A stretch of 64,000 bases of DNA, from assembly GCA_050575255.1 (NCBI GenBank), contig JBNZDD010013634.1, forward strand, positions 1,950,280 through 2,014,279. Reading direction: 5' to 3'. Source of the stretch: Harriotta raleighana. Its lineage: Eukaryota. Position 1 is the first letter of the stretch. The number at the start of each line of letters is the position of its first letter. The position numbers were made by a program, and so were the translations under genes. Positions 50,820 to 64,000 of the stretch are shown piece by piece. The notes under the pieces are model-generated. The model was not told the DNA's origin. It made no database searches and saw only the letters and a program-made list of their open reading frames with translations.

Positions 50820-51076
50820 TTGATTCCAGATAGAGCGAGTTTCCTTACTCCATATGCCTGATAATAATCCCTCCAGAGAGAAAATAAAACGATAATAAAA
50901 TTGGTCATTTCAATCCACAGCTGTTTGTGGGGACACTGCTGAGCGCAATCGGCTGGCGCGTTTCGCCCACAAATACACAGTCAAATTCACTTTCCAGCAT
51001 ATTCCATGAAGCGCTTTGAGACGTCTCAAAGACCTGAAAAGCGCTATATCAGATGCAAGGATTATTATTATTATTA
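50820..51076 (+). mobile_element. SINE, same family, CpG-intact (young-looking), directly beside the promoter
   Basis: Body gcgcaatcggctggcgcgtttcgcccac and tail gcaaggattattattattatt. Confidence 0.85.
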
Positions 51077-51099
51077 GTTGAGAATGTTATGGATCTTGC

Positions 51100-51300
51100 A
51101 ACCAGTGACTCAGGTGGGAAGCTGCTTCTGCGTCTGCGCGGCTTTGACCTCGCCGATGCACTCTGGGTATTGTAGTTCGGGTTGGGCGCTGACTCAATGC
51201 CAACCAGAGGACACGAGCAGACTACAGCTCCCGAGACACCCCGCGGCACAGACCCAGCGCAACATTGTAGCTAATCGCGGAAGCAAGAGCAACATTGAAT
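51100..51300. promoter_or_regulatory. CpG-enriched promoter with two divergent ZNF143/THAP11-type (ACTACAnnTCCC) motifs; likely AKIP1 promoter, possibly bidirectional
   Basis: ACTACAATACCCAGAGTGCA on - strand (51157-51176), ACTACAGCTCCCGAGACACC on + strand (51221-51240), TGACTCA near 51106 and 51190, ETS core CGGAAG near 51278, local CpG excess. Confidence 0.7.
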
Positions 51301-51527
51301 GAACAACTGGAGTCAGAAGTTCTGAAGTTCTTCAGCTTTTCACTGGGACAAGTCAGGAGAGTCAATTGCTCAAATTAAGTTTTAAAAAATTATCCAGAGG
51401 AAGAAAGAGCTGGGAGTGGAGCCGGCTACAGACCCTCTCCCTCCCACGCCACCCCTCCCCCCTACACCCCGCCACCCCCAAGGAAGAAATTCAAACCCAC
51501 AATTTGAGAAGGAAATGCTACAGCTGT
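51280..51527 (+). other. AKIP1: Candidate non-coding exon 1 of AKIP1 (5' end approximate)
   Basis: Lies downstream of the promoter motifs, with donor TGT|gtaagt at 51528. An upstream exon is required by the acceptor in front of the ATG. Confidence 0.35.
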
Positions 51528-51871
51528 GTAAGTGAATGACTTGAATGTCAAATACCAAGTTTATGATGTCAAGGGACTTGCTTTGTAAATTGCAAACCCA
51601 TTTAAAATACGGTCCTGTCTAAAGATCTTTCATCTTCCTCGTAATCAAGAGAAAAAGCGAAAACAAAAAGTAATTTTGAGTCCCGAGTGTTTTAATTTGT
51701 TTTGTTAATTGTTTTGATTTGCATTTGTTAAGTCTGGAGCTGGGGTGGTGGAGAGAGAGTGACAGTAAAACGCGGCGACTTTATTGTGAAAATAAAACGC
51801 AAAATACTGCAGATGTTGGAATTCTGAAACAAGAACAGAAGTCTCTGGGAACACTCTCAACAGGTCAGACA

Positions 51872-52105
51872 AGCAAGTTTCCTTACTCCACACGTCTAAT
51901 AATAGTCCCTCAAAAACAAAACAATAATAAAATGTTTATTTCAATCCACGACTGTTTGTGGGACGCTGCTGTGCTCAATCGGCTGGCGTGTTTCTCCCTC
52001 AAAATATACAGTCAATTCACTTTACGGTATATTCTGTGAAGCGCTTTGAGACGTTTTAAAGACGTGATAAGGCGCTATATCAAATGCAAGGATTAGTAAT
52101 ATTAC
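51872..52105 (+). mobile_element. 5'-truncated SINE, same family, inserted into an older repeat (51790-51871 and 52122-52196)
   Basis: SINE body and tail; the flanks appear to join into one - strand element. Confidence 0.8.
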
Positions 52106-52488
52106 ATTTATTACTGTGTAATATCGATGAAGAAAGGAAAGTGAGTCCATGTTTCAGGTCCACGACCCTCAGAACCCTTCGTCATGACTTCTGACCATAT
52201 ATCAGTCACATTTATATATTAAAAAAAACATGGTTCTAAAAAGTGAAGCTGGCTGACAGAAGAACAGACTCTCTCCTGTTCATACTTCTCTGATTGTGTA
52301 GATACATGAATGGAAACCAGATTAAATTTAATTGCACTTTGGAGCAATTTGCCTTTAATTTTAATTAGCTGAATGGTCCGATAAAGAATAATGTTATGCT
52401 GTGTATTACGTATTTTTGTTTGAAAGACAGAAAAACGCAATGGATATTTACAATTATTCTGCTGTCTCTCTCAGCAGGGTGAACAAAC

Positions 52489-52671
52489 ATGGACAATGAG
52501 AGCAGCCACATTGAATATTCTTTGAAATGCTCAGCGCAACTCGGGCTTGAAGTGCTGAGGCGCGCTCAGCAGAGACAAACACGTTGGTCTGTTGGTGATC
52601 CGTCATGTTCTACAACAGTTGGCGCAGAATCTTCAGCGGTGCGAGATGAGACGGCGGGACAAGCGGCAGAG
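52489..52671 (+). CDS. AKIP1: AKIP1 short (canonical-length) form of first coding exon, 61 codons, putative donor GAG|gtattt
   Basis: Phase-0 GT at 52672 is compatible with the phase-0 acceptor at 58886 and gives a length close to the human exon. An alternative phase-0 donor is AAG|gtagtg at 52720. Both donors are weak, so the exact site is uncertain. Confidence 0.55.
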
Positions 52672-55600
52672 GTATTTCCAGTAGCTACGTTTGTGAAAGA
52701 AGAAGCACCAGCACATAAGGTAGTGAGACATGGAGGGACACCTCCAGCACCTACACGTGACATGGGCAGAGCAAGAGGGCCAAGTTATACCCGTACACAA
52801 GACATGCTCAGATCAAGAGGTCCAAAACCCACACCTACACGTGAGATGGTCGGACCAAGAAGTCCACGTCCAGTCTCTACGCGTGACTTGGTCAGACCAA
52901 GAAGGCCAAGTCCAGCCTCTACACGTGACTTGGTCGGACCGAGAGGTCCAAGTCCAGTCTCTACACATGACTTGGTCACACTAAGAGGGCCAAGTCCAGC
53001 CTCTACACGTGACACTGTCAGACCGAGAGGTCCAAGTCCAGCCTCTATACGTGATACGGTCAGATTACGAGGGCCGAGTCCCGCATTTACACGTGACACG
53101 GTCAGGCCACGAGGGCCAAGTCCCGCCCCTACACGTGACATGGTCAGACCAAGAGAGCCAAGTCCCGCCCTTACACGTGTCGCGGTCAGGCCAAGAGAGC
53201 CAAGTCCCGCCTCTACACGTGACGTGGTCAGACCAAGAGAGCCAAGTCCCGCCCCTACACGTGACGCGGTCAGACCAAGAGAGCCAAGTCCCGCCCCTAC
53301 ACGTGACGCAGTCAGACCAAGAGAGCCAAGTCCCGCCCCTACACGTGACGCAGTCAGACCAAGAGAGCCAAGTCCCGCCTCTACACGTGACGCAGTCAGA
53401 CCAAGAGAGCCAAGTCCCGCCCCTACCTACCAGATGGTCAGACAAAGCAGGGCAAGTACAGCACCTGTGTATCAGATGGCCCAACAAAGCAGGACATATA
53501 CAGCACCCACACCTGATTTGGGCATGAGAGAAGGGACATTTTTGATACCCAGACAGGAGGTACTGATATCAGGATTGGTGGGACAAGCAGGGCCATATCA
53601 AGCACCAAAACCTTTTTTTGGAAGAGAAGCATGGACAGGTCCATTACCTCAGGAAGTGGTAAGGGAAGGTGGGACGGGTCCCGCACCTCGACAAGAGGTA
53701 CTGAGACAAGTAGTGCCATATCAAGTACTAAAACGAGTGGTGGTAACACAACCAGTAAGATTTGCAGGGATGCAACCAGTAAGAGGGGTTCCACTACCTG
53801 TACATGAGGTAATGAGGCCTGGATTAATGAGACCTGGAATGATGATAAATGAAGGATCTTGGCATTCCACAAAATACCCAGTCAGTAGAGAAGCCCCAAA
53901 ACATCCATTGTTGAGGCAAGGAGCTCCAAACCCACCACCAAAACAAGGGTCTATACAAGAAACACTTCTATTGCGAGATGAACCTAGCCGTGCTATACTC
54001 AGAAATGGAGCAATGAATGAGACGGTGACAAATGAACCAATAGATAAGGTGGCACTGGGTGAACCAAGGCTTGAGATGTTTAGGGATGAACCAAGATATC
54101 AGGTTTTGAGAGATGATCCAAAACATGAATTAATGAGACATCAATCAAGAAATGAGGTGTTGAAAGATGAACCAAAACATGGGGAGGGAAGAGAAGCAAA
54201 GACGATTCAACCACATGAACCCAAGGTTCCAATAGAAGAAATGACGTGTCCAACACACAATCATGACATGGTGACTGAAAAAAAAGCTTTTGAAGCACAT
54301 AAGAATCAGGTAGTCAAAAAAACAGGAAAATATCCAACCCTTACCCATGAGGTGGTGCCTGAGGTAAAGAGCTGTTTAGTACATAAACGTGAAGAGGACA
54401 CAGAAACACAGAGATGTCAAGCACATCAACGTGAAGTGATGCCAGAAGCAGGCAAATGTCCAAGGCATCACCGTGAAGGGATAATAAAAGCAGGGAAATG
54501 TCCAACACATAACCGTGAGATGGTGACAGAGACAGAGACCTATGCAGCACATAAACGTGAAACGGTAACAGATACAGAGAAGTGTCCCAAACATAACCGG
54601 GAGCTGGTAATAGAAGCAGGGAGATGTTTGGCACATAAACGTGAGGTGGTGACTGAAACAGGGAGCTGTTTGGCACATGAAGTTATGGAAGAAGCAAATA
54701 AGTATCCAGCACATAAAGCTGAGATTGTGGAAGAAGCAAAGGGATCTTCAACGCATAACCATGAGGTGGTGACAGAAGCAGAAACATCTCTAAGTTATCG
54801 TGAACCAATGACTGAAGCAGACCTTTTTCCAACATATAAACCTGAGGTTGTGACCGATAAAGAGATCTCTCCAATATATGAGATAGTGACAGAAGTAGAG
54901 ACCTCTCCAATACACAAAGCTGAAGTTGTGATCAAGCAAGAAATATATCTAAAACATAAACCTGAGATGGTAACAGAAGTGGAGATATATCCAAAAGATG
55001 AACCTGAAGTTGTGACCAATCAAGAAATAACTCCAATACCACATGAACCTGGGGTTTTGATCGATCAAGTGATATCTTCAGCATCTGAACCTGAGATGAT
55101 GGCAGATAAAGAGGCATATCCAACACGTGAACCTGAAATAGTGACAGAAGCAATATCCTCAGCATATGAACCTGACGTTGTGATCGATAAAGAGACATCT
55201 CCAACACAAAAATTGGAGATGGTTACAGAACTGGATACAGGCCCGACAAGTAAAACTGAGGTGGTCACAGAAGCAAAGACATCTCCAATACAAAAATCTG
55301 AGATAATGACTGAAGAGACTAGTCCCACACATAAATGTGAAGTGGTGATGGAAAAAGAGACCTCTCCAACACAAAATCCTGAGGCGGTGACTGAAGAGAC
55401 ATGCCCTATGCATACACCTCAGCCTGTGATCAAAGGGACATGTTCTGCACATGAAGCAGAATTGGTGATAAACAAGACCTATTCAACGTATACACCTGAG
55501 CCTGTGATCAAAGAGACATACTCTTCACATGAACCTGAGTTGGGGATCAAAGACACATGTCCTATGCATAAATCCGAGCCTGTGATCAAAGAGACATGTT

Positions 55601-58173
55601 CTGCACATGAACCAGAATTGGTGATAAACGAAACCTACTCAATGTATACACCTGAACCTGTGATCAAAGAGACATACTCTGCACATGAACCTGAGTTGGG
55701 GATCAAAGAGACATGTTCTTTGCATCAACCTGAACTTGTGATCAAAGGGACATGTTCTGCACACGAACCTGAGTTGGGGATCAAAGAGACATGTTCTTTC
55801 CATCAACCTGAACCTGTGATCAAAGGGACATGTTCTGCTCATGAACCTGAGTTAGTGATAAAAGGGATGTCTTCTGTACATAAACCTGAACTGGAGGCAA
55901 ACCTAGAGACATCTCTAGCAGACAAACCTGAGGTGGTAACAGATGAGACATCTCCCACACATGAACCTAAACAGGTGGTCATCGATGAACAGGCATTTCC
56001 AACACATGAACCCGAGATGGTGACAGATGAAGACATATCTCCAGCACACACACCTGAGGTGGTGACAGAAGAATACACATTTCCATCACACACACCTGAG
56101 GTGGTGACAAATGAAGAAATATTTCCAATACACAAGCCTGAGGTGGTGACAGAAGAAGACTTATTTCCACCACACACACCGGAGGTGGTGACCGATGGAG
56201 AGATATTTCCAATACACAAGCCTGAGGTGGTGACAGGTGTAGACACATCTCAAACAACTAAACCTAAAACAGGATTAGATCCGCCAAAACATTTGGTGGT
56301 AAGAAAGATACCAAAAGATACGTTGGCCACAGAAGGGCCAGTATCAAAAAATGTGGCAAGAGGAACAAAAACAAAAAATACACTGGAGGCACAAGCAACA
56401 ATGAAAGTGGTGAGAGGGCAATCACCAATGTATGCTAAAGGAGAAAGGATACAAAAATATGCATTAAGACTTCCATTACCAAAAACTGAAATTGGAGGAC
56501 AAGTGGTGAGTAATGTGATGAGAGGGCCATCACCAAAATGTACAGTGAGAGGGCAAGCTCCAAAATTTCCAGTGAGAGGACCATCACCAAAAACTGGAGT
56601 AGAGGGACAAGTGGTCAATAAGGTATTGAGAGCACCATCACTGAAACCTGGAGAAGACGGACAAGTGATGAGTAATGTAGTGAGAGAGCCATCAGCCAAA
56701 TCTGGAGTAGATGGACAAGTGGTGAATAATGTAGTGGGAGCACCATCATCAAAACCTGAAGAAGCAGGAAAAGTGGTGAGTAATGTAGTGAGACCACCAT
56801 CACCAAAACCTGGAGTGGGAGGACACACATCAAAATATGGAGTGAAGGGACCGTCACCAAAACTTGCAGGCAGAGGACAAGTGGCAGATAACGCAGTGAG
56901 GGGAACATCACCAAAAAATTTAGTGAGAGGACAATCACCAAAAAGTACAATGGTGAAAGAAGTACTTAAACCTGACATTGGAGGAAAAGCACCAACACAT
57001 CTGGGGAAAACAGACACAGTTATCCACTCAGAACTGATAAATGCACTAAAACAAGCTGAACTGAGAGATGCACAACAACATGCAGAGCTGAGAGAGCTGA
57101 GAGAAGCGTTGAAACAGGCAACTGAGAGAGATGTACCAAAATATGAGATGGAAAGACAAGCACCAAAACGTGCTGAAGAGAAAGAAGTGGCTAAAATTCC
57201 AATCGCGGAAGAAGCACCAAAGAAAGCGGTGGTCACAGAAGTGCCTAAACCTGTGTTGGGAGAAGCACTAAGACATCCAGTGTTGAGATATGGAACAAAA
57301 CCACTTAAGGTGTCTAAACCACCAGTGAGTGAAGCAACAAAACATGTGCTGGTGAGAGATGAGCCCAAATCACCATTGGTAAGAGATGTGCCCAAATCAC
57401 CATTGGTGAGAGATGAGCCCAAATCACCATTGGTGAGAGATGAATCTAAGCCATTAGTGGGAGACACATCAACAGAAGGAGTGATGAGAAATGAGTCAAA
57501 ATATGTGGTCGGAGTAGAAGAGATGCAGTCACATCCATCATCTGAACATAGGGCAGAGATGGTTCCAGCACATAAACATTCTGTAATGACCGAAGCAGAG
57601 ATATGTCAAGCACTCAGATATGGTTTCATAACAGAAGCAGATATCTACTCAGCCCATAAACATGGTTTGATAACAGACACAGTGATATGTTCGGGACATA
57701 AACATGGTTTGGTGAAAGAAGCCACAATACATCCACCATCAGAACATAATGTTGTGATAGAACCAGAAGAGACAAATCCGGTATCAGAAGATGAAGTAAT
57801 GGGTCAAGAGGAGACATTTCCACCATCAGAAGATGAGATGATAAGGCAACAAGAGATACAACCACCATCAGAAGAAGGAGTGATAGGGCGAGAAGAGATG
57901 GAACCATCATCAATTGATGAGGTGCTGGGACTAAAAGAGTCACGTCCACCATCAGAACATGAGTTGCTGGGACAAAAAGAGTCACTTCCACCACCTAAGG
58001 TGTTAGGACAAAGAAAGGTGACATATTCTACTCCAGAATATGAGGTTTTAAGACGGGAAAAGATCTATTCAGCACCGGAGGATGAGGTGATAGGACAAGA
58101 TAATAAATACATACTTAGAAATAAATATGCTTTAGGTTTAAAAGAGAGAGGAAATGTCTATGTTGGGAATTAA
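52489..58173 (+). CDS. AKIP1: AKIP1 first coding exon continuing as a 1894-aa uninterrupted ORF (AKIP1 N-terminus plus giant tandem-repeat extension)
   Basis: Acceptor tctctctcag/cag (NAGNAG, 52472-52477) and strong Kozak aacATGG at 52489. N-terminus SLKCSAQLGLEVLRRAQQRQTRW matches human AKIP1 SLQRSARLALEVLERAKRRAVDW (recalled). Stop-free for 5685 nt, all repeat units are multiples of 3, and no SINE insertions are seen. Confidence 0.85.
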   Translation: MDNESSHIEYSLKCSAQLGLEVLRRAQQRQTRWSVGDPSCSTTVGAESSAVRDETAGQAAEVFPVATFVKEEAPAHKVVRHGGTPPAPTRDMGRARGPSYTRTQDMLRSRGPKPTPTREMVGPRSPRPVSTRDLVRPRRPSPASTRDLVGPRGPSPVSTHDLVTLRGPSPASTRDTVRPRGPSPASIRDTVRLRGPSPAFTRDTVRPRGPSPAPTRDMVRPREPSPALTRVAVRPREPSPASTRDVVRPREPSPAPTRDAVRPREPSPAPTRDAVRPREPSPAPTRDAVRPREPSPASTRDAVRPREPSPAPTYQMVRQSRASTAPVYQMAQQSRTYTAPTPDLGMREGTFLIPRQEVLISGLVGQAGPYQAPKPFFGREAWTGPLPQEVVREGGTGPAPRQEVLRQVVPYQVLKRVVVTQPVRFAGMQPVRGVPLPVHEVMRPGLMRPGMMINEGSWHSTKYPVSREAPKHPLLRQGAPNPPPKQGSIQETLLLRDEPSRAILRNGAMNETVTNEPIDKVALGEPRLEMFRDEPRYQVLRDDPKHELMRHQSRNEVLKDEPKHGEGREAKTIQPHEPKVPIEEMTCPTHNHDMVTEKKAFEAHKNQVVKKTGKYPTLTHEVVPEVKSCLVHKREEDTETQRCQAHQREVMPEAGKCPRHHREGIIKAGKCPTHNREMVTETETYAAHKRETVTDTEKCPKHNRELVIEAGRCLAHKREVVTETGSCLAHEVMEEANKYPAHKAEIVEEAKGSSTHNHEVVTEAETSLSYREPMTEADLFPTYKPEVVTDKEISPIYEIVTEVETSPIHKAEVVIKQEIYLKHKPEMVTEVEIYPKDEPEVVTNQEITPIPHEPGVLIDQVISSASEPEMMADKEAYPTREPEIVTEAISSAYEPDVVIDKETSPTQKLEMVTELDTGPTSKTEVVTEAKTSPIQKSEIMTEETSPTHKCEVVMEKETSPTQNPEAVTEETCPMHTPQPVIKGTCSAHEAELVINKTYSTYTPEPVIKETYSSHEPELGIKDTCPMHKSEPVIKETCSAHEPELVINETYSMYTPEPVIKETYSAHEPELGIKETCSLHQPELVIKGTCSAHEPELGIKETCSFHQPEPVIKGTCSAHEPELVIKGMSSVHKPELEANLETSLADKPEVVTDETSPTHEPKQVVIDEQAFPTHEPEMVTDEDISPAHTPEVVTEEYTFPSHTPEVVTNEEIFPIHKPEVVTEEDLFPPHTPEVVTDGEIFPIHKPEVVTGVDTSQTTKPKTGLDPPKHLVVRKIPKDTLATEGPVSKNVARGTKTKNTLEAQATMKVVRGQSPMYAKGERIQKYALRLPLPKTEIGGQVVSNVMRGPSPKCTVRGQAPKFPVRGPSPKTGVEGQVVNKVLRAPSLKPGEDGQVMSNVVREPSAKSGVDGQVVNNVVGAPSSKPEEAGKVVSNVVRPPSPKPGVGGHTSKYGVKGPSPKLAGRGQVADNAVRGTSPKNLVRGQSPKSTMVKEVLKPDIGGKAPTHLGKTDTVIHSELINALKQAELRDAQQHAELRELREALKQATERDVPKYEMERQAPKRAEEKEVAKIPIAEEAPKKAVVTEVPKPVLGEALRHPVLRYGTKPLKVSKPPVSEATKHVLVRDEPKSPLVRDVPKSPLVRDEPKSPLVRDESKPLVGDTSTEGVMRNESKYVVGVEEMQSHPSSEHRAEMVPAHKHSVMTEAEICQALRYGFITEADIYSAHKHGLITDTVICSGHKHGLVKEATIHPPSEHNVVIEPEETNPVSEDEVMGQEETFPPSEDEMIRQQEIQPPSEEGVIGREEMEPSSIDEVLGLKESRPPSEHELLGQKESLPPPKVLGQRKVTYSTPEYEVLRREKIYSAPEDEVIGQDNKYILRNKYALGLKERGNVYVGN
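52730..53440 (+). repeat. 42-bp coding minisatellite, about 17 units (PSPAPTRDAVRPRE)
   Basis: Unit ccaagtcccgcccctacacgtgacgcagtcagaccaagagag, near-identical over 53140-53430. Confidence 0.95.
55395..55890 (+). repeat. 39-bp coding minisatellite (ETCSAHEPELVIK)
   Basis: Recurring gtgatcaaagagacatgttctgcacatgaacctga. Confidence 0.9.
57349..57460 (+). repeat. 27-bp coding repeat (LVRDEPKSP) x about 4
   Basis: ggtgagagatgagcccaaatcaccatt units. Confidence 0.9.
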
Positions 58174-58885
58174 ACTAGGATTCAATAGTGCAGTTTGGGA
58201 GGGCGGGGGCGAGATGGTTATTTGATTATGTTTGGGGGTACAAGGGAAAACCTAGTCAATGCACTATATCCTAAGTCAATGGACCCCACTAGCTCCTCTG
58301 AAAATCACGGTCTACTTTGAGTATATTTTATTTACATTCTGTTTTCATGTGGAATTGATCATTGATAGATTAAAATCCCAAACTGACTAACGAAAGCACC
58401 TCACTAAAAATACAAAAGTCAGCCTGTCTTTGACTATACATAATAGTGAGGAAACACTGAACTTCCCCCAGATTGTGTTGAATGATATAGAACACACAAA
58501 AAAAATTCTATCTGAGGAAGGAATGGACTTGAATGACTTTTCTCAGTAATGTACTATGTTGTACTCTGTGATGCTGCCCCTTGTGAAGGGCACTCTGTAA
58601 ATGCAAGCTGCTTTTGCGTTATGTATTTATTTGCTGTATAACTTTAGTATTGGTTAATTTTACTAAATTATTTTAATTCTACTCCATACCTCTCACTAAT
58701 AATATGATATTTGATAAATTGTTTGATGAATACTTTTTTGGGGAAATTGAAATGTTTGACTGTAACTTGCTGACGAACAAGCACATGTCAGGGAGTTAGC
58801 TCCCTGGCCAGTTTCTTAATGGCTCTGAACACTTAATTGTGAAGCTGCATAAGGGCCTCTAATAGTTTATTTCTTTTTTTGACAG

Positions 58886-58957
58886 GGTAAAAAAATCTTT
58901 GATGAAGCGTTTGCTTCAATGCTGCAGTTCATGGCTCAAACAACCAAACTGTGCCAG
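58886..58957 (+). CDS. AKIP1: AKIP1 internal exon (GKKIFDEAFASMLQFMAQTTKLCQ)
   Basis: Acceptor ttctttttttgacag, donor CAG|gtgagt, 72 nt, phase 0/0. Resembles human SASFRTMAEFMDYTSSQCG. Confidence 0.92.
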
Positions 58958-59263
58958 GTGAGTCTTGCAGTTACCAGCATCGGTACAGTATTAGCCACAT
59001 TTATTTGTTGACCAAATGCTTAAATTGTCATTACATGTACTCTGTCCTGAATCGGTGCAGGTACAGACTAGAGGCATGGTGTGGCAGAGACTATATAGAT
59101 TATATTTTAAATTGATCAACTGTAGGAGCTGGTGACAGGATTGCAACAGCAGAGTGCACTGCCTCCAGTGAGTTGGATGTGATTGATATGTTAATACAGT
59201 ACATGTGCTTGCTGTAATAATCACAACCCTTACTGCAGTATTCCTGTACCTTTCATTTTACAG

Positions 59264-59374
59264 CGGTACTGTGACAACTTGCCAGCTTCAAGTCGAAGCA
59301 AGTGGGAGGAAAATCATATTCGTAGGTACCATATGGATGAGTTTGCTCCATCTGTGAGACCGTCCAGACAGCCT
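59264..59374 (+). CDS. AKIP1: AKIP1 internal exon copy a (RYCDNLPASSRSKWEENHIRRYHMDEFAPSVRPSRQP)
   Basis: Acceptor tttcattttacag, donor CCT|gtgagt, 111 nt, phase 0/0. HIRRYH resembles human HVYRYH. Confidence 0.88.
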
Positions 59375-59993
59375 GTGAGTAACCGTTGGGGAAGCATTAT
59401 GGTCTGGGAAGCGAGCAGAAATGAACTCTGTGCTGTCACTGTGCTAATTCAACCTGTAAGTGCCTTTATGTTTAAAAAAAAATGCCAGATGTAAAAAAAA
59501 ACATACTTACACATTATCATATCTTGGGATTAATTCTTGCCTTAATTCATCATCTCAAAATACACAAACCAGTATCACCACCTGTACTTCAAAACTGAGC
59601 GAAATGTTTATTGGACAATGAAAGATCGCACAGTGTGGCAGAGCCAGGTCCAGCTAAATTAACAAAAAAAAACAGGTGAACAAACAATGGCTTATTGCCC
59701 TTGTTCGAGGCAGGAGGCCAAGTGGATTGCTGGAAAGACAGGCGGTACAGGAGATATGGCTCGTACTCTGTTTCTGTCATTCACCCGAGCTGCCTCCTGC
59801 AGCCTGTTGTGTCTGCGTGATGAGTGACAACAAGAAATTATATTAGGATGAGCCAACTAGGAGAGCTGGAGAAGAATTGAAACACCAGAGTCTTCTGGTG
59901 AGCTGGATGTGAATGATGTGTTAATATAGTACATGCGTATGCTATAATAATTACAACCCTTACTGAAATAATCCTGTACCTCTCATTTTACAG

Positions 59994-60098
59994 CAGTACC
60001 TTAACAGCAAACCAGCTTCTAGTCAAAGCAAGTGGGAGGAAAACCATATTCGTCAGTACCAAATGCGTGAGACTGCTCCATCAGTATCCAGACAGCCT
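59994..60098 (+). CDS. AKIP1: AKIP1 internal exon copy b, tandem duplicate (QYLNSKPASSQSKWEENHIRQYQMRETAPSVSRQP)
   Basis: Acceptor ctcattttacag, donor CCT|gtgagt, 105 nt, phase 0/0, open frame. Paralogous to 59264-59374 including intronic flanks. Confidence 0.72.
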
Positions 60099-60345
60099 GT
60101 GAGTAACATATGGGATGGTGTTATGGTCTGGATAGAGAGCAGAAACCAACTCTGCTGTCATTATGCTTACTTTATCCATTGCAAATGGAATAAATTATTC
60201 TTATTCTTATTGGTATTTATATGCTGAGGGAAAAGAAAATAGCACTTTACAGAATGTACGAGAAAGGGAATTGGGGCGAAACTAAGGGTCCAATAGCCTG
60301 CCTTTGGTGATCATCTCTCTCTTTCTCTATCTTTGCAACAAACAG

Positions 60346-60489
60346 ATTAATTGCACTGAGGAGATTCACATTGAAGTGGCTCCTGGCTCTTACAAGGTCA
60401 CAGCAAGCTCGAAACAATCTGACAGACAGCAGACACACGTGATAAATCTCAGGCCAGGCCAGACCATCGACCTTACCTTTACAACATGA
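60346..60489 (+). CDS. AKIP1: AKIP1 last coding exon ([47 protein letters not shown])
   Basis: Pyrimidine tract followed by aacag acceptor. Resembles the human C-terminus LYIEVYPGTYSVTVGS...THVVAVDSGQSVDLVF. TGA at 60487-60489. Confidence 0.93.
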
Positions 60490-62074: not shown

Positions 62075-62402
62075 ATTATAATAATAATAATCCTTGCATT
62101 TGATATAACACTTTTCACGTCTTCTAGACGTCTCAAAGTGCTTCACAGAATATACTGTAAAGTGAATTGACTGGATATTTGTGGGCGAAATGCGGCAGCC
62201 AATTGTGGACAGCAGAGTCCCCCAAACAGTCGAGGATTTAAATCAGCAACTTTATTGTTGTTTGTTTTTTTGGAGGGATTATTATTAGGTGTGTGGAGTA
62301 AGGAAACTTGTCCACGGTTTTGCCCTGTCCTGCCTAGGTTCGAATAGAGGTCTCACACTTGTAAGGCAAGTGCTCTAACCATTGAGCTGCAGGAGCTCCA
62401 CA
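62075..62402 (-). mobile_element. tRNA-derived SINE, full length, same family
   Basis: Reverse complement has A box, B-box-like ttcgaacc, body and (TAT)n tail. Confidence 0.88.
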
Positions 62403-63270: not shown

Positions 63271-63523
63271 CTGCTGCTGAATTTCTTTCATTTCATCAGA
63301 TTTCACTTTCTGTGCCTCCACGGATTCCCGCCTGGCTGTGACTCCCTGGAGATGTGCCAGTCTGTGTACTTCTCTCACCCGGTCCTCTGAAGAGATGGAT
63401 TGAAACGCGTCCTGGGGTTTCAGCAGCTGTGAGCGTTTTTTGGCTCTGTGCCTCTCAATTAGTTCATACTCACGTTCTGCCGCCTTCTGGAAATCATCCT
63501 GCAGTTGCTGAAGTGTCTTCTCT
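63271..63523 (-). CDS. Coding exon of a convergent gene, charged helical peptide (EKTLQQLQDDFQKAAEREYELIERHRAKKR...KVKSDEMKEIQQQ); C11orf16-like by synteny only
   Basis: Acceptor cttatttctctttcag, donor CAG|gtaaga, 253 nt = 1 + 84 open codons. Identity is inferred from human gene order, not from sequence recognition. Confidence 0.7.
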
Positions 63524-64000
63524 CTGAAAGAGAAATAAGTGAAGTAATGTTACCTTAATAATAATAATTCACGTGTTACCTTGAAGAAAATAATTGGAAA
63601 TTGCAGCTCTCCCACAACTTTCATATCCTTGTATGATCTGCAATGCAACAAACCCCAGAAGAAATGTGTTCTCAATTTAGGGTGTGTGATTAGGAGAGGA
63701 ATCCAAATGTTTGTTGTTTTTAAGTACATTTGGTTTCAGTTTCGGTCCTGCAATTGAGTTTAAGCATCTGCACTTCCACCTTTGAGACATGGATCTGAAC
63801 ACAAAGAAAAGTCTCCTATCATTTCTCATTGCCCGGTGTTCGAAGATGGAATAAAGTTGTGGTGGGCATGAATGGACATCAAAGTAAACAGGTTATTGTT
63901 TGGTATTAAATTGGAAGTGGCATTCGGAAGAGTCATGAAAATGGACGGTATGGAAGATTTCGGATTGACGCATTCGAGGATTTTTTCTGAGGTTCATTTT

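Follow-up and report, generated by a model that had tools for sequence, protein, structure and literature searches.

AKIP1 is a small adaptor of approximately 160–210 residues which docks on the catalytic subunit of PKA and on NF-kB p65. Here we analyse the AKIP1 locus of the chimaera Harriotta raleighana in a window of 64,000 nucleotides (NCBI GenBank assembly GCA_050575255.1, contig JBNZDD010013634.1, positions 1,950,280 to 2,014,279 of the forward strand). The window means this whole stretch read 5' to 3', and all coordinates given below count from its first letter. It carries the coding exons of a short AKIP1, and the first of these runs on, in frame and with no stop, into the following intron, which results in an open reading frame (ORF) of 1894 codons on the plus strand (Table 1). 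This 5.5-kb frame looks like real coding sequence by the signals described below, and the best reading that we can offer, albeit an unproven one, is that it is translated into a giant isoform of AKIP1.

By homology the locus is that of a member of the AKIP1 family. The one true relative of the ORF among the matches inspected is the A-kinase-interacting protein 1-like of Callorhinchus milii (XP_007885750.1, 202 aa; E 8.4e-16), and ORF codons 1–61 are identical to its residues 1–61 at 46 of 61 positions (75%). Past residue 61 the Callorhinchus protein consists of the products of the window exons starting at 58886, 59264, 59994 and 60346, in that order, when the two are compared exon by exon (Table 1). 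Searching with the Callorhinchus protein as query also recovered AKIP1 proteins of 161–174 aa from three sharks, Heptranchias perlo, Scyliorhinus torazame and Pristiophorus japonicus. In all three the first coding exon ends at the same position, and the columns L, G, E-V-L, R-A and W-S of this exon are invariant; the family PF27911.1 is assigned to all four homologues. Every AKIP1 exon at the locus is in phase 0, and the canonical product is a short AKIP1 of about 204 aa (61+24+37+35+47, summing exon lengths).

A first-pass annotation of this DNA had named the gene AKIP1, and the Callorhinchus and shark homologues agree with that name exon by exon. It had placed the start of the next AKIP1 exon at 58886, which the match to Callorhinchus residues 62–85 bears out, and had proposed a small canonical form, which by the homologue uses the donor after codon 61. 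The AKIP1 part of the frame had been given as 61–77 codons; it ends after codon 61, where the match to Callorhinchus residues 1–61 stops, and the figure of 77 is unsupported. The ORF is indeed an in-frame continuation of the first coding exon, and the claim that it stays open for more than 1800 codons past the AKIP1 N-terminus is correct, with 1833 codons and 0 stops. Since codons 1–61 are the canonical first exon and the homologue then jumps to 58886, the long ORF would be a read-through of the weak donor at 52672.

An open frame of this length is hardly expected by chance. Not a single in-frame internal stop is present in 52489..58173 on the plus strand, whereas stops number 159 and 164 among the 1894 codons of the remaining two plus frames, and 72, 32 and 75 in the minus frames across the same span. 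The base composition predicts a stop at 5.7% of codons, so that the probability of 1894 open codons is 3e-49, and it is still 4e-33 when each of six clean repeat families is reduced to one unit (1265 codons). The next-longest stop-free runs within the 64-kb window measure 451 and 243 codons, and we take the 451-codon run to be the one containing a 405-aa minus-strand ORF of the purine-rich region. That ORF (56250..57467) was considered as a gene and rejected, being the pyrimidine-rich complement of a purine-rich coding strand; its minus frame has 32 stops across the region. The window contains 5 N positions, none of them within the ORF region, and the repeats are diverged rather than collapsed, so we give little weight to an assembly artefact.

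The ORF is built largely of tandem repeats. Tandem Repeats Finder reported 21 rows on it, with periods of 42, 27, 39/78/156, 54/108/162, 81, 36 and 15 bp, and the clearest arrays are listed as A to G in Table 1. At the protein level the top lag is 14, 13, 9 or 18 residues in all 18 overlapping windows of 200 residues; even where it is weakest (ORF residues 301–600), identity at the lag is 0.15–0.17 against a background of 0.07. These periodicities show nearly the whole frame to be a mosaic of old, diverged short repeats, through which the reading frame has been kept. In the last two units of array G, different but synonymous codons encode S, P, E, V and the final Y. Cys-x-x-His motifs occur 17 times, in arrays B and C (54200–55850, residues 587–1115) and at residue 1734, usually at intervals of 13 or 14 residues, and these regularly spaced motifs are possible metal ligands. 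There are also 43 Ser/Thr-Pro sites in the array part. The idea that the repeats had grown from the 14 codons that close the first coding exon (SAPEDEVIGQ against SAVRDETAGQ) was rejected, as the local alignment scores of 27–32 fall within the shuffle distributions (fractions of 0.37, 0.92 and 1.0 of shuffles reached the observed score). Comparison of the extension with canonical AKIP1 gave no similarity beyond chance (local scores 27–32, shuffle means 31–39).

The extension is predicted to be mostly disordered. In a charge-hydropathy plot, nine of ten ORF segments lie beyond the dividing line, on its disordered side. Single-sequence AlphaFold2 models of the ORF in two parts have mean predicted local distance difference test (pLDDT) values of 36.7 and 37.4; 933 of 1000 residues in the first part and 812 of 894 in the second are below 50. 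Single-sequence models are often poor for any protein, and the low pLDDT thus agrees with disorder and is no proof of it. Only one long helix is predicted with fair confidence (Table 1); the 10-residue blocks over residues 511–550 of the second-half model have mean pLDDT of 65, 78, 79 and 61. Three further statements of the first-pass annotation concern this part of the locus. The repeat units had been described as multiples of 3, and all the Tandem Repeats Finder periods agree; the extension had been called disordered, with which, as a prediction, both charge-hydropathy and the low pLDDT are in accord. The third described a frame free of short interspersed nuclear elements (SINEs) within a window densely strewn with them. 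Self-comparison of the window finds no dispersed self-match inside the ORF, so the first half stands, whereas "densely strewn" is only moderately true, because the 2-kb bins elsewhere in the window have at most 29% dispersed-repeat coverage and at most 18 copies.

Several statistics point to coding. Across the ORF, G makes up 0.36 and T 0.12 of codon position 1, and A makes up 0.46 and C 0.09 of position 3; this bias and the purine richness both begin at 52489 and stop near 58170, and the flanks are without either. In order to allow for the repeat structure, we took 46 units from six families and reassigned, at random positions, the number of differences that they show from their family consensus. 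Approximately 9.8 in-frame stops are expected in this way and 0 are seen, the product of the per-family probabilities being 3.7e-5, and selection against stops in the ORF is clear. Array C also shows clear constraint at the protein level, and is the single array to do so: the proportions of synonymous and nonsynonymous differences are 0.389 (pS) and 0.151 (pN), giving a ratio of nonsynonymous to synonymous substitution rates (dN/dS) of 0.31 with Fisher p 1e-5 in the ORF frame only, against 0.81 and 0.82 in the wrong frames, indicating frame-specific purifying selection. Processing signals are sparse in the ORF. Poly(A) hexamers number 1 in 5.6 kb of it, against 1.49 per kb outside (codon-shuffle mean 3.9, P 0.08), and acceptor-like pyrimidine tracts have a density of 0.36 per kb, as compared with 2.3 per kb outside it. 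Our reading is that selection holds the frame open and keeps its composition, mostly not the identity of its residues, as is common in disordered repeat proteins.

Table 1. Features of the AKIP1 locus in the 64,000-nucleotide window of Harriotta raleighana (donor scores in bits; x, any residue).
Feature	Position	Strand	Remarks
Candidate promoter and non-coding first exon of AKIP1	51100..51527	+	Sequence reading; exon limits inferred
AKIP1 first coding exon, short form	52476..52671	+	Acceptor after ...ctctctcag; ATG 52489; codons 1-61
1894-codon ORF	52489..58173	+	ATG start; TAA stop at 58171-58173
Canonical 5' splice site GAG|GTATTT	52672..52677	+	Phase 0, weak; position fixed by homologue
In-frame extension	52672..58173	+	1833 codons and stop TAA; no stop within, codon-position bias
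Array A	52741..53412	+	16 x 42 bp (14 aa, SPAPTRDxVRPRxP)
Array B	54379..54672	+	7 x 42 bp (AHKREVVTETGxCP); Cys-x-x-His motifs
Array C	55393..55860	+	6 x 78 bp (two 13-aa subunits, KETCSAHEPELVI)
Array D	55921..56256	+	8 x 42 bp (HKPEVVTEEDxFPx)
Array E	56473..56796	+	6 x 54 bp (PSPKxGVxGQVVSNVVRx); two strongest donor-like sites, 56506 and 56776
Predicted helix	57013..57126	+	Only long helix predicted with fair confidence; ORF residues 1509-1546 (38 residues), second-half model residues 509-546
Array F	57349..57429	+	3 x 27 bp (LVRDEPKSP)
Array G	57775..58110	+	8 x 42 bp (xPPSEDEVIGQEEx)
Candidate phase-0 donors to exon 58886	58018; 58087	+	AAG|GTGACA (6.63); GAG|GTGATA (5.76)
Poly(A) hexamer cluster	58102..58174	+	AATAAA at 58102 and 58120; ATTAAA 58169-58174 overlapping TAA
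AKIP1 exon, 24 aa	58886..58957	+	17/24 identical to Callorhinchus residues 62-85
AKIP1 exon, 37 aa, duplicated exon copy 1	59264..59374	+	28/37 columns identical to Callorhinchus residues 86-120
AKIP1 exon, 35 aa, duplicated exon copy 2	59994..60098	+	29/35 identical to Callorhinchus residues 121-155
AKIP1 last coding exon, 47 aa and TGA	60346..60489	+	44/47 identical to Callorhinchus residues 156-202

How the long frame could reach a mature transcript depends on its two ends. Donor sites were scored with a simple, approximate matrix, by which the donor at 52672 reaches 4.67 bits, while the AKIP1 donors further downstream reach 12.48, 6.75 and 6.75. At the other end three poly(A) hexamers lie within 94 bases (probability of three or more, 4e-4 at the density of the window), the last of them overlapping the stop codon, and it is followed by a CA at 58191 and by G/T-rich sequence, going by sequence match. 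Going by sequence, the weakness of the donor at 52672 and the clustering of poly(A) hexamers where the ORF ends make plausible the choice between splice sites or poly(A) sites which the first-pass annotation had suggested for the two forms. A transcript that retained the intron and was spliced further downstream would carry a premature stop, which argues for either a join to exon 58886 or a poly(A) site, and we slightly prefer an ending at the frame's own stop and poly(A) site over splicing onward to 58886.

In this scheme, use of the donor at 52672 would yield the conserved short AKIP1. When it is skipped, about 1,830 codons of diverged 9-, 13-, 14- and 18-residue repeats would be translated, and the frame, acting as a composite terminal exon, would end at the TAA at 58171 that overlaps ATTAAA, giving a protein of about 1,894 aa. 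Such a protein would keep the AKIP1 N-terminal region and swap the C-terminal domain for a long, mostly disordered, acidic and proline-rich repeat tail. In human AKIP1, according to PMC3083391, the PKA catalytic subunit is bound through exon 1 and exons 5/6, and p65 through exon 4. A form with its own stop would accordingly keep one of the two sites for the PKA catalytic subunit, and a form spliced onward would hold both, 1,800 residues apart. We put the probability that read-through of the donor at 52672, with the stop and poly(A) site of the frame itself as its end, produces a giant AKIP1 isoform at roughly 0.4. The sequence shows the ORF, its continuity in frame with AKIP1, its coding-like statistics and the splice pattern of the short form; we infer the transcription and translation of the extension, its end and any function.

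A number of observations weigh against this isoform. A search for RNA sequencing runs for 52476–58173 listed 0. The dN/dS over all adjacent repeat units is 0.75, from which controls in the wrong frames do not differ (0.98 and 0.75); of the five arrays tested separately, four (A, B, D and E) carry no frame-specific signal; and the differences by codon position are distributed only as 126:141:165. The hexamer cluster sits in a stretch of 71% A+T, and its two AATAAA precede the stop, so their use would generate stop-less mRNAs. The strongest donor-like sites in the ORF, at 56506 and 56776 with 9.45 bits each, could cut the long form short. Protein searches were also negative. When the whole ORF was compared with proteins of 1042–3314 aa, the best 8000 candidates by word sharing were scored and none passed, and comparison of the ORF N-terminus with giant-length proteins gave 37 candidates, none of which scored. 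The first 1200 ORF residues, searched against 1.84 billion representatives at E <=0.001, gave 73 matches and no giant homologue; 23 of the matches were inspected by sequence or source name and the others judged by low identity alone. Apart from the Callorhinchus AKIP1-like protein, the remaining 72 show 14–50% identity, and the 22 inspected among them are unrelated repeat proteins of bacteria, shark, crustaceans, snail and Hydra. RefSeq entries for Callorhinchus and for sharks, several isoforms among them, are present in the protein sets, and thus a conserved and expressed giant form might have been annotated.

These searches have their own reach. The shark and Callorhinchus AKIP1 isoforms within the searched length range were X2 and X3 forms of 161–202 aa only, and the short shark AKIP1 proteins themselves fell below the E 0.001 level in the search with ORF residues 1–1200. 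From the alignment, no identical word of 5 residues is common to the N-termini of the ORF and of the shark proteins, and therefore a giant shark isoform could be missed. A Pfam scan of the whole ORF at E up to 1 returned 0 families, and the same Pfam gave no PF27911 even for the Callorhinchus AKIP1-like protein; a search of the ESM Atlas gave no usable match. Searches of the literature on AKIP1 splice variants, tandem repeats and fish or shark orthologues turned up no description of a large AKIP1, and passages of PMC5526564 on AKIP1 and shark hold nothing on gene size.

It is possible, though we consider it unlikely, that the extension is a giant internal exon, spliced from one of the phase-0 donors at 58018 or 58087 to exon 58886. 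The product would be about 1,990–2,010 aa in length (1,843 or 1,866 codons plus 143), with the conserved N-terminus and C-terminal domain held approximately 1,800 disordered residues apart. With all AKIP1 exons in phase 0 the join to 58886 would be in frame, the two donors score near the real donors at 59375 and 60099 (6.75), and it would be one of the two ways in which a retained intron avoids the premature stop mentioned above. Past 58110 the sequence takes on an intron-like, A+T-rich character, and the chance that the 28 codons between 58087 and the stop are open is 0.19. However, the 14-residue register of array G, with its synonymous changes, continues past 58087 to 58110, and the poly(A) hexamers cluster just at the ORF end. 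Moreover, there are 49 phase-0 GT sites scoring above 4 in the ORF, because valine codons begin with GT, and the fit of 58018 and 58087 is therefore not specific, with much stronger donor-like sites lying further inside.

We regard it as rather doubtful that the frame is untranslated today, being either a relic of an extension that once was coding or a minisatellite complex that stayed open through its purine-rich, T-poor make-up and repeat homogenisation, so that only the short AKIP1 is made. The weak amino-acid constraint in most arrays and the lack of an annotated giant relative in the protein searches would fit, and with unit lengths in multiples of 3, the gain or loss of whole units leaves the frame intact of itself. 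Yet the other two plus frames of the same purine-rich DNA are full of stops, as counted above, and within-family divergence alone should have introduced several into this one. The frame is furthermore held through at least seven arrays that look unrelated and through their linkers, array C has its frame-specific ratio, and the codon-position bias ends where the ORF does. A very improbable alternative is that the frame is coding but separate from the AKIP1 N-terminus, as a nested or overlapping unit (starting for example at the first internal ATG at 52762) or behind another upstream exon: the short-form donor is conserved in Callorhinchus and the three sharks and the extension resembles canonical AKIP1 only at chance level, but the frame is continuous with the AKIP1 ATG through a 23-codon linker with no stop (chance of an independent open frame sharing the exon frame in this way, ~0.09), acceptor-like tracts are rare in the ORF, and no promoter-like feature of its own was seen, with no search aimed at one. 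The rest of the probability falls to other readings.

The giant isoform by read-through can be set beside several known systems. Canonical AKIP1 of Callorhinchus, sharks and human is the product of the same gene, with first, middle and last exons here matching Callorhinchus; the canonical forms found are small and none has the extension, whereas donor read-through at this locus would add 1,833 codons. Composite terminal exons, which arise by intronic polyadenylation, usually add a few to some tens of codons. They likewise begin at a 5' splice site that is weak and continue in frame into the intron up to a stop with a poly(A) signal, the likeness being one of sequence features; the 1,833 codons with coding-type statistics are unlike the usual short run-ons. 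Giant single exons coding for disordered tandem repeats are also known, as in titin PEVK, the neurofilament KSP tails and the 14-residue repeats of MAP4. The extension is similar to these in its short P-, E-, V- and K-rich units of 9–18 residues, its low predicted order, and its fast-drifting sequence with preserved frame, although there is no detectable homology and the likeness is one of composition only. As for human AKIP1, the forms 1A, 1B and 1C are small and differ by the skipping of small exons, according to PMC3083391.

The top match to the repeat part is a "collagen alpha-2(V) chain-like" protein of Carcharodon carcharias (1300 aa; E 3e-30, 30% identity), in which a long array is made up of 13-residue units around P-E-V-G-L-K, a core comparable to P-E-L-G-I-K in array C. 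Judging from its sequence it differs in having a cysteine-rich N-terminus, C-terminal leucine-rich repeats and no AKIP1 parts, and we read the likeness as convergent low complexity with an E-value inflated by repetition. A-kinase anchoring proteins (AKAPs) use an amphipathic helix to bind the regulatory-subunit dimer; the predicted 38-residue helix of the extension, which is without a Pfam match, recalls this as a thought and not as a result.

One may go further and imagine, as a long shot, that chimaeras make a second, giant AKIP1 in which the N-terminal region, corresponding to a binding site for the PKA catalytic subunit in human, is fused to a disordered array of 1,800 residues with 17 regularly spaced Cys-x-x-His motifs, 43 Ser/Thr-Pro sites and one long helix. 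Such a protein might be a scaffold tethering the PKA catalytic subunit, a condensate-former or a metal binder with no mammalian counterpart, having arisen by in-frame expansion within an intron and being switched by competition between splicing and polyadenylation. If true, the locus would be a natural experiment on how a small adaptor becomes a scaffold, with an AKIP1 N-terminus heading a 1,900-residue repeat protein, and an example of a very large coding exon born within an intron by in-frame tandem expansion behind a weak donor. If the frame is silent, 5.7 kb have been kept open with no detectable amino-acid constraint, which would be a caution for gene calling based on ORF length.

Two observations concern the short AKIP1 itself. 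A 730-bp tandem duplication with 81–83% identity (59168–59430 and 59898–60154) carries two copies of one AKIP1 exon. Both copies are represented in the 202-aa Callorhinchus protein and only one in the three shark proteins, and thus the exon duplication looks chimaera-specific, with both copies apparently spliced in. For the last AKIP1 exon (60346–60486), Pfam gives CarboxypepD_reg as a weak match that stays below the threshold (E 4.8e-4; 20.8 bits, with the cut-off at 32.3), which hints at a beta-sandwich-like C-terminal domain.

Upstream of the coding exons, the region 51100–51530 contains CpG and is richer in G+C (GC 0.50 in 51000–51499), with a good GT donor near 51528, and may hold the promoter and non-coding first exon of AKIP1. 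Near 51222 this candidate promoter includes an ACTACA...CTCCC element of the ACTACAGCTCCCGAG type, a putative ZNF143/SBS-like binding site.

Among the remaining features of the window, the sequences at 50880–51070, 51880–52090 and 62100–62400 belong to one dispersed SINE-like family with at most 18 self-matches; none of its copies lies in the ORF, and two are intronic, lying shortly before the AKIP1 coding exon. On the minus strand, 63271–63525 is an open, charged, helix-like exon of 85 codons between acceptor-like and donor-like sites. Pfam returned 0 families for four other ORFs or exons of the window, this one included, and it is probably part of a neighbouring gene arranged tail-to-tail with AKIP1.

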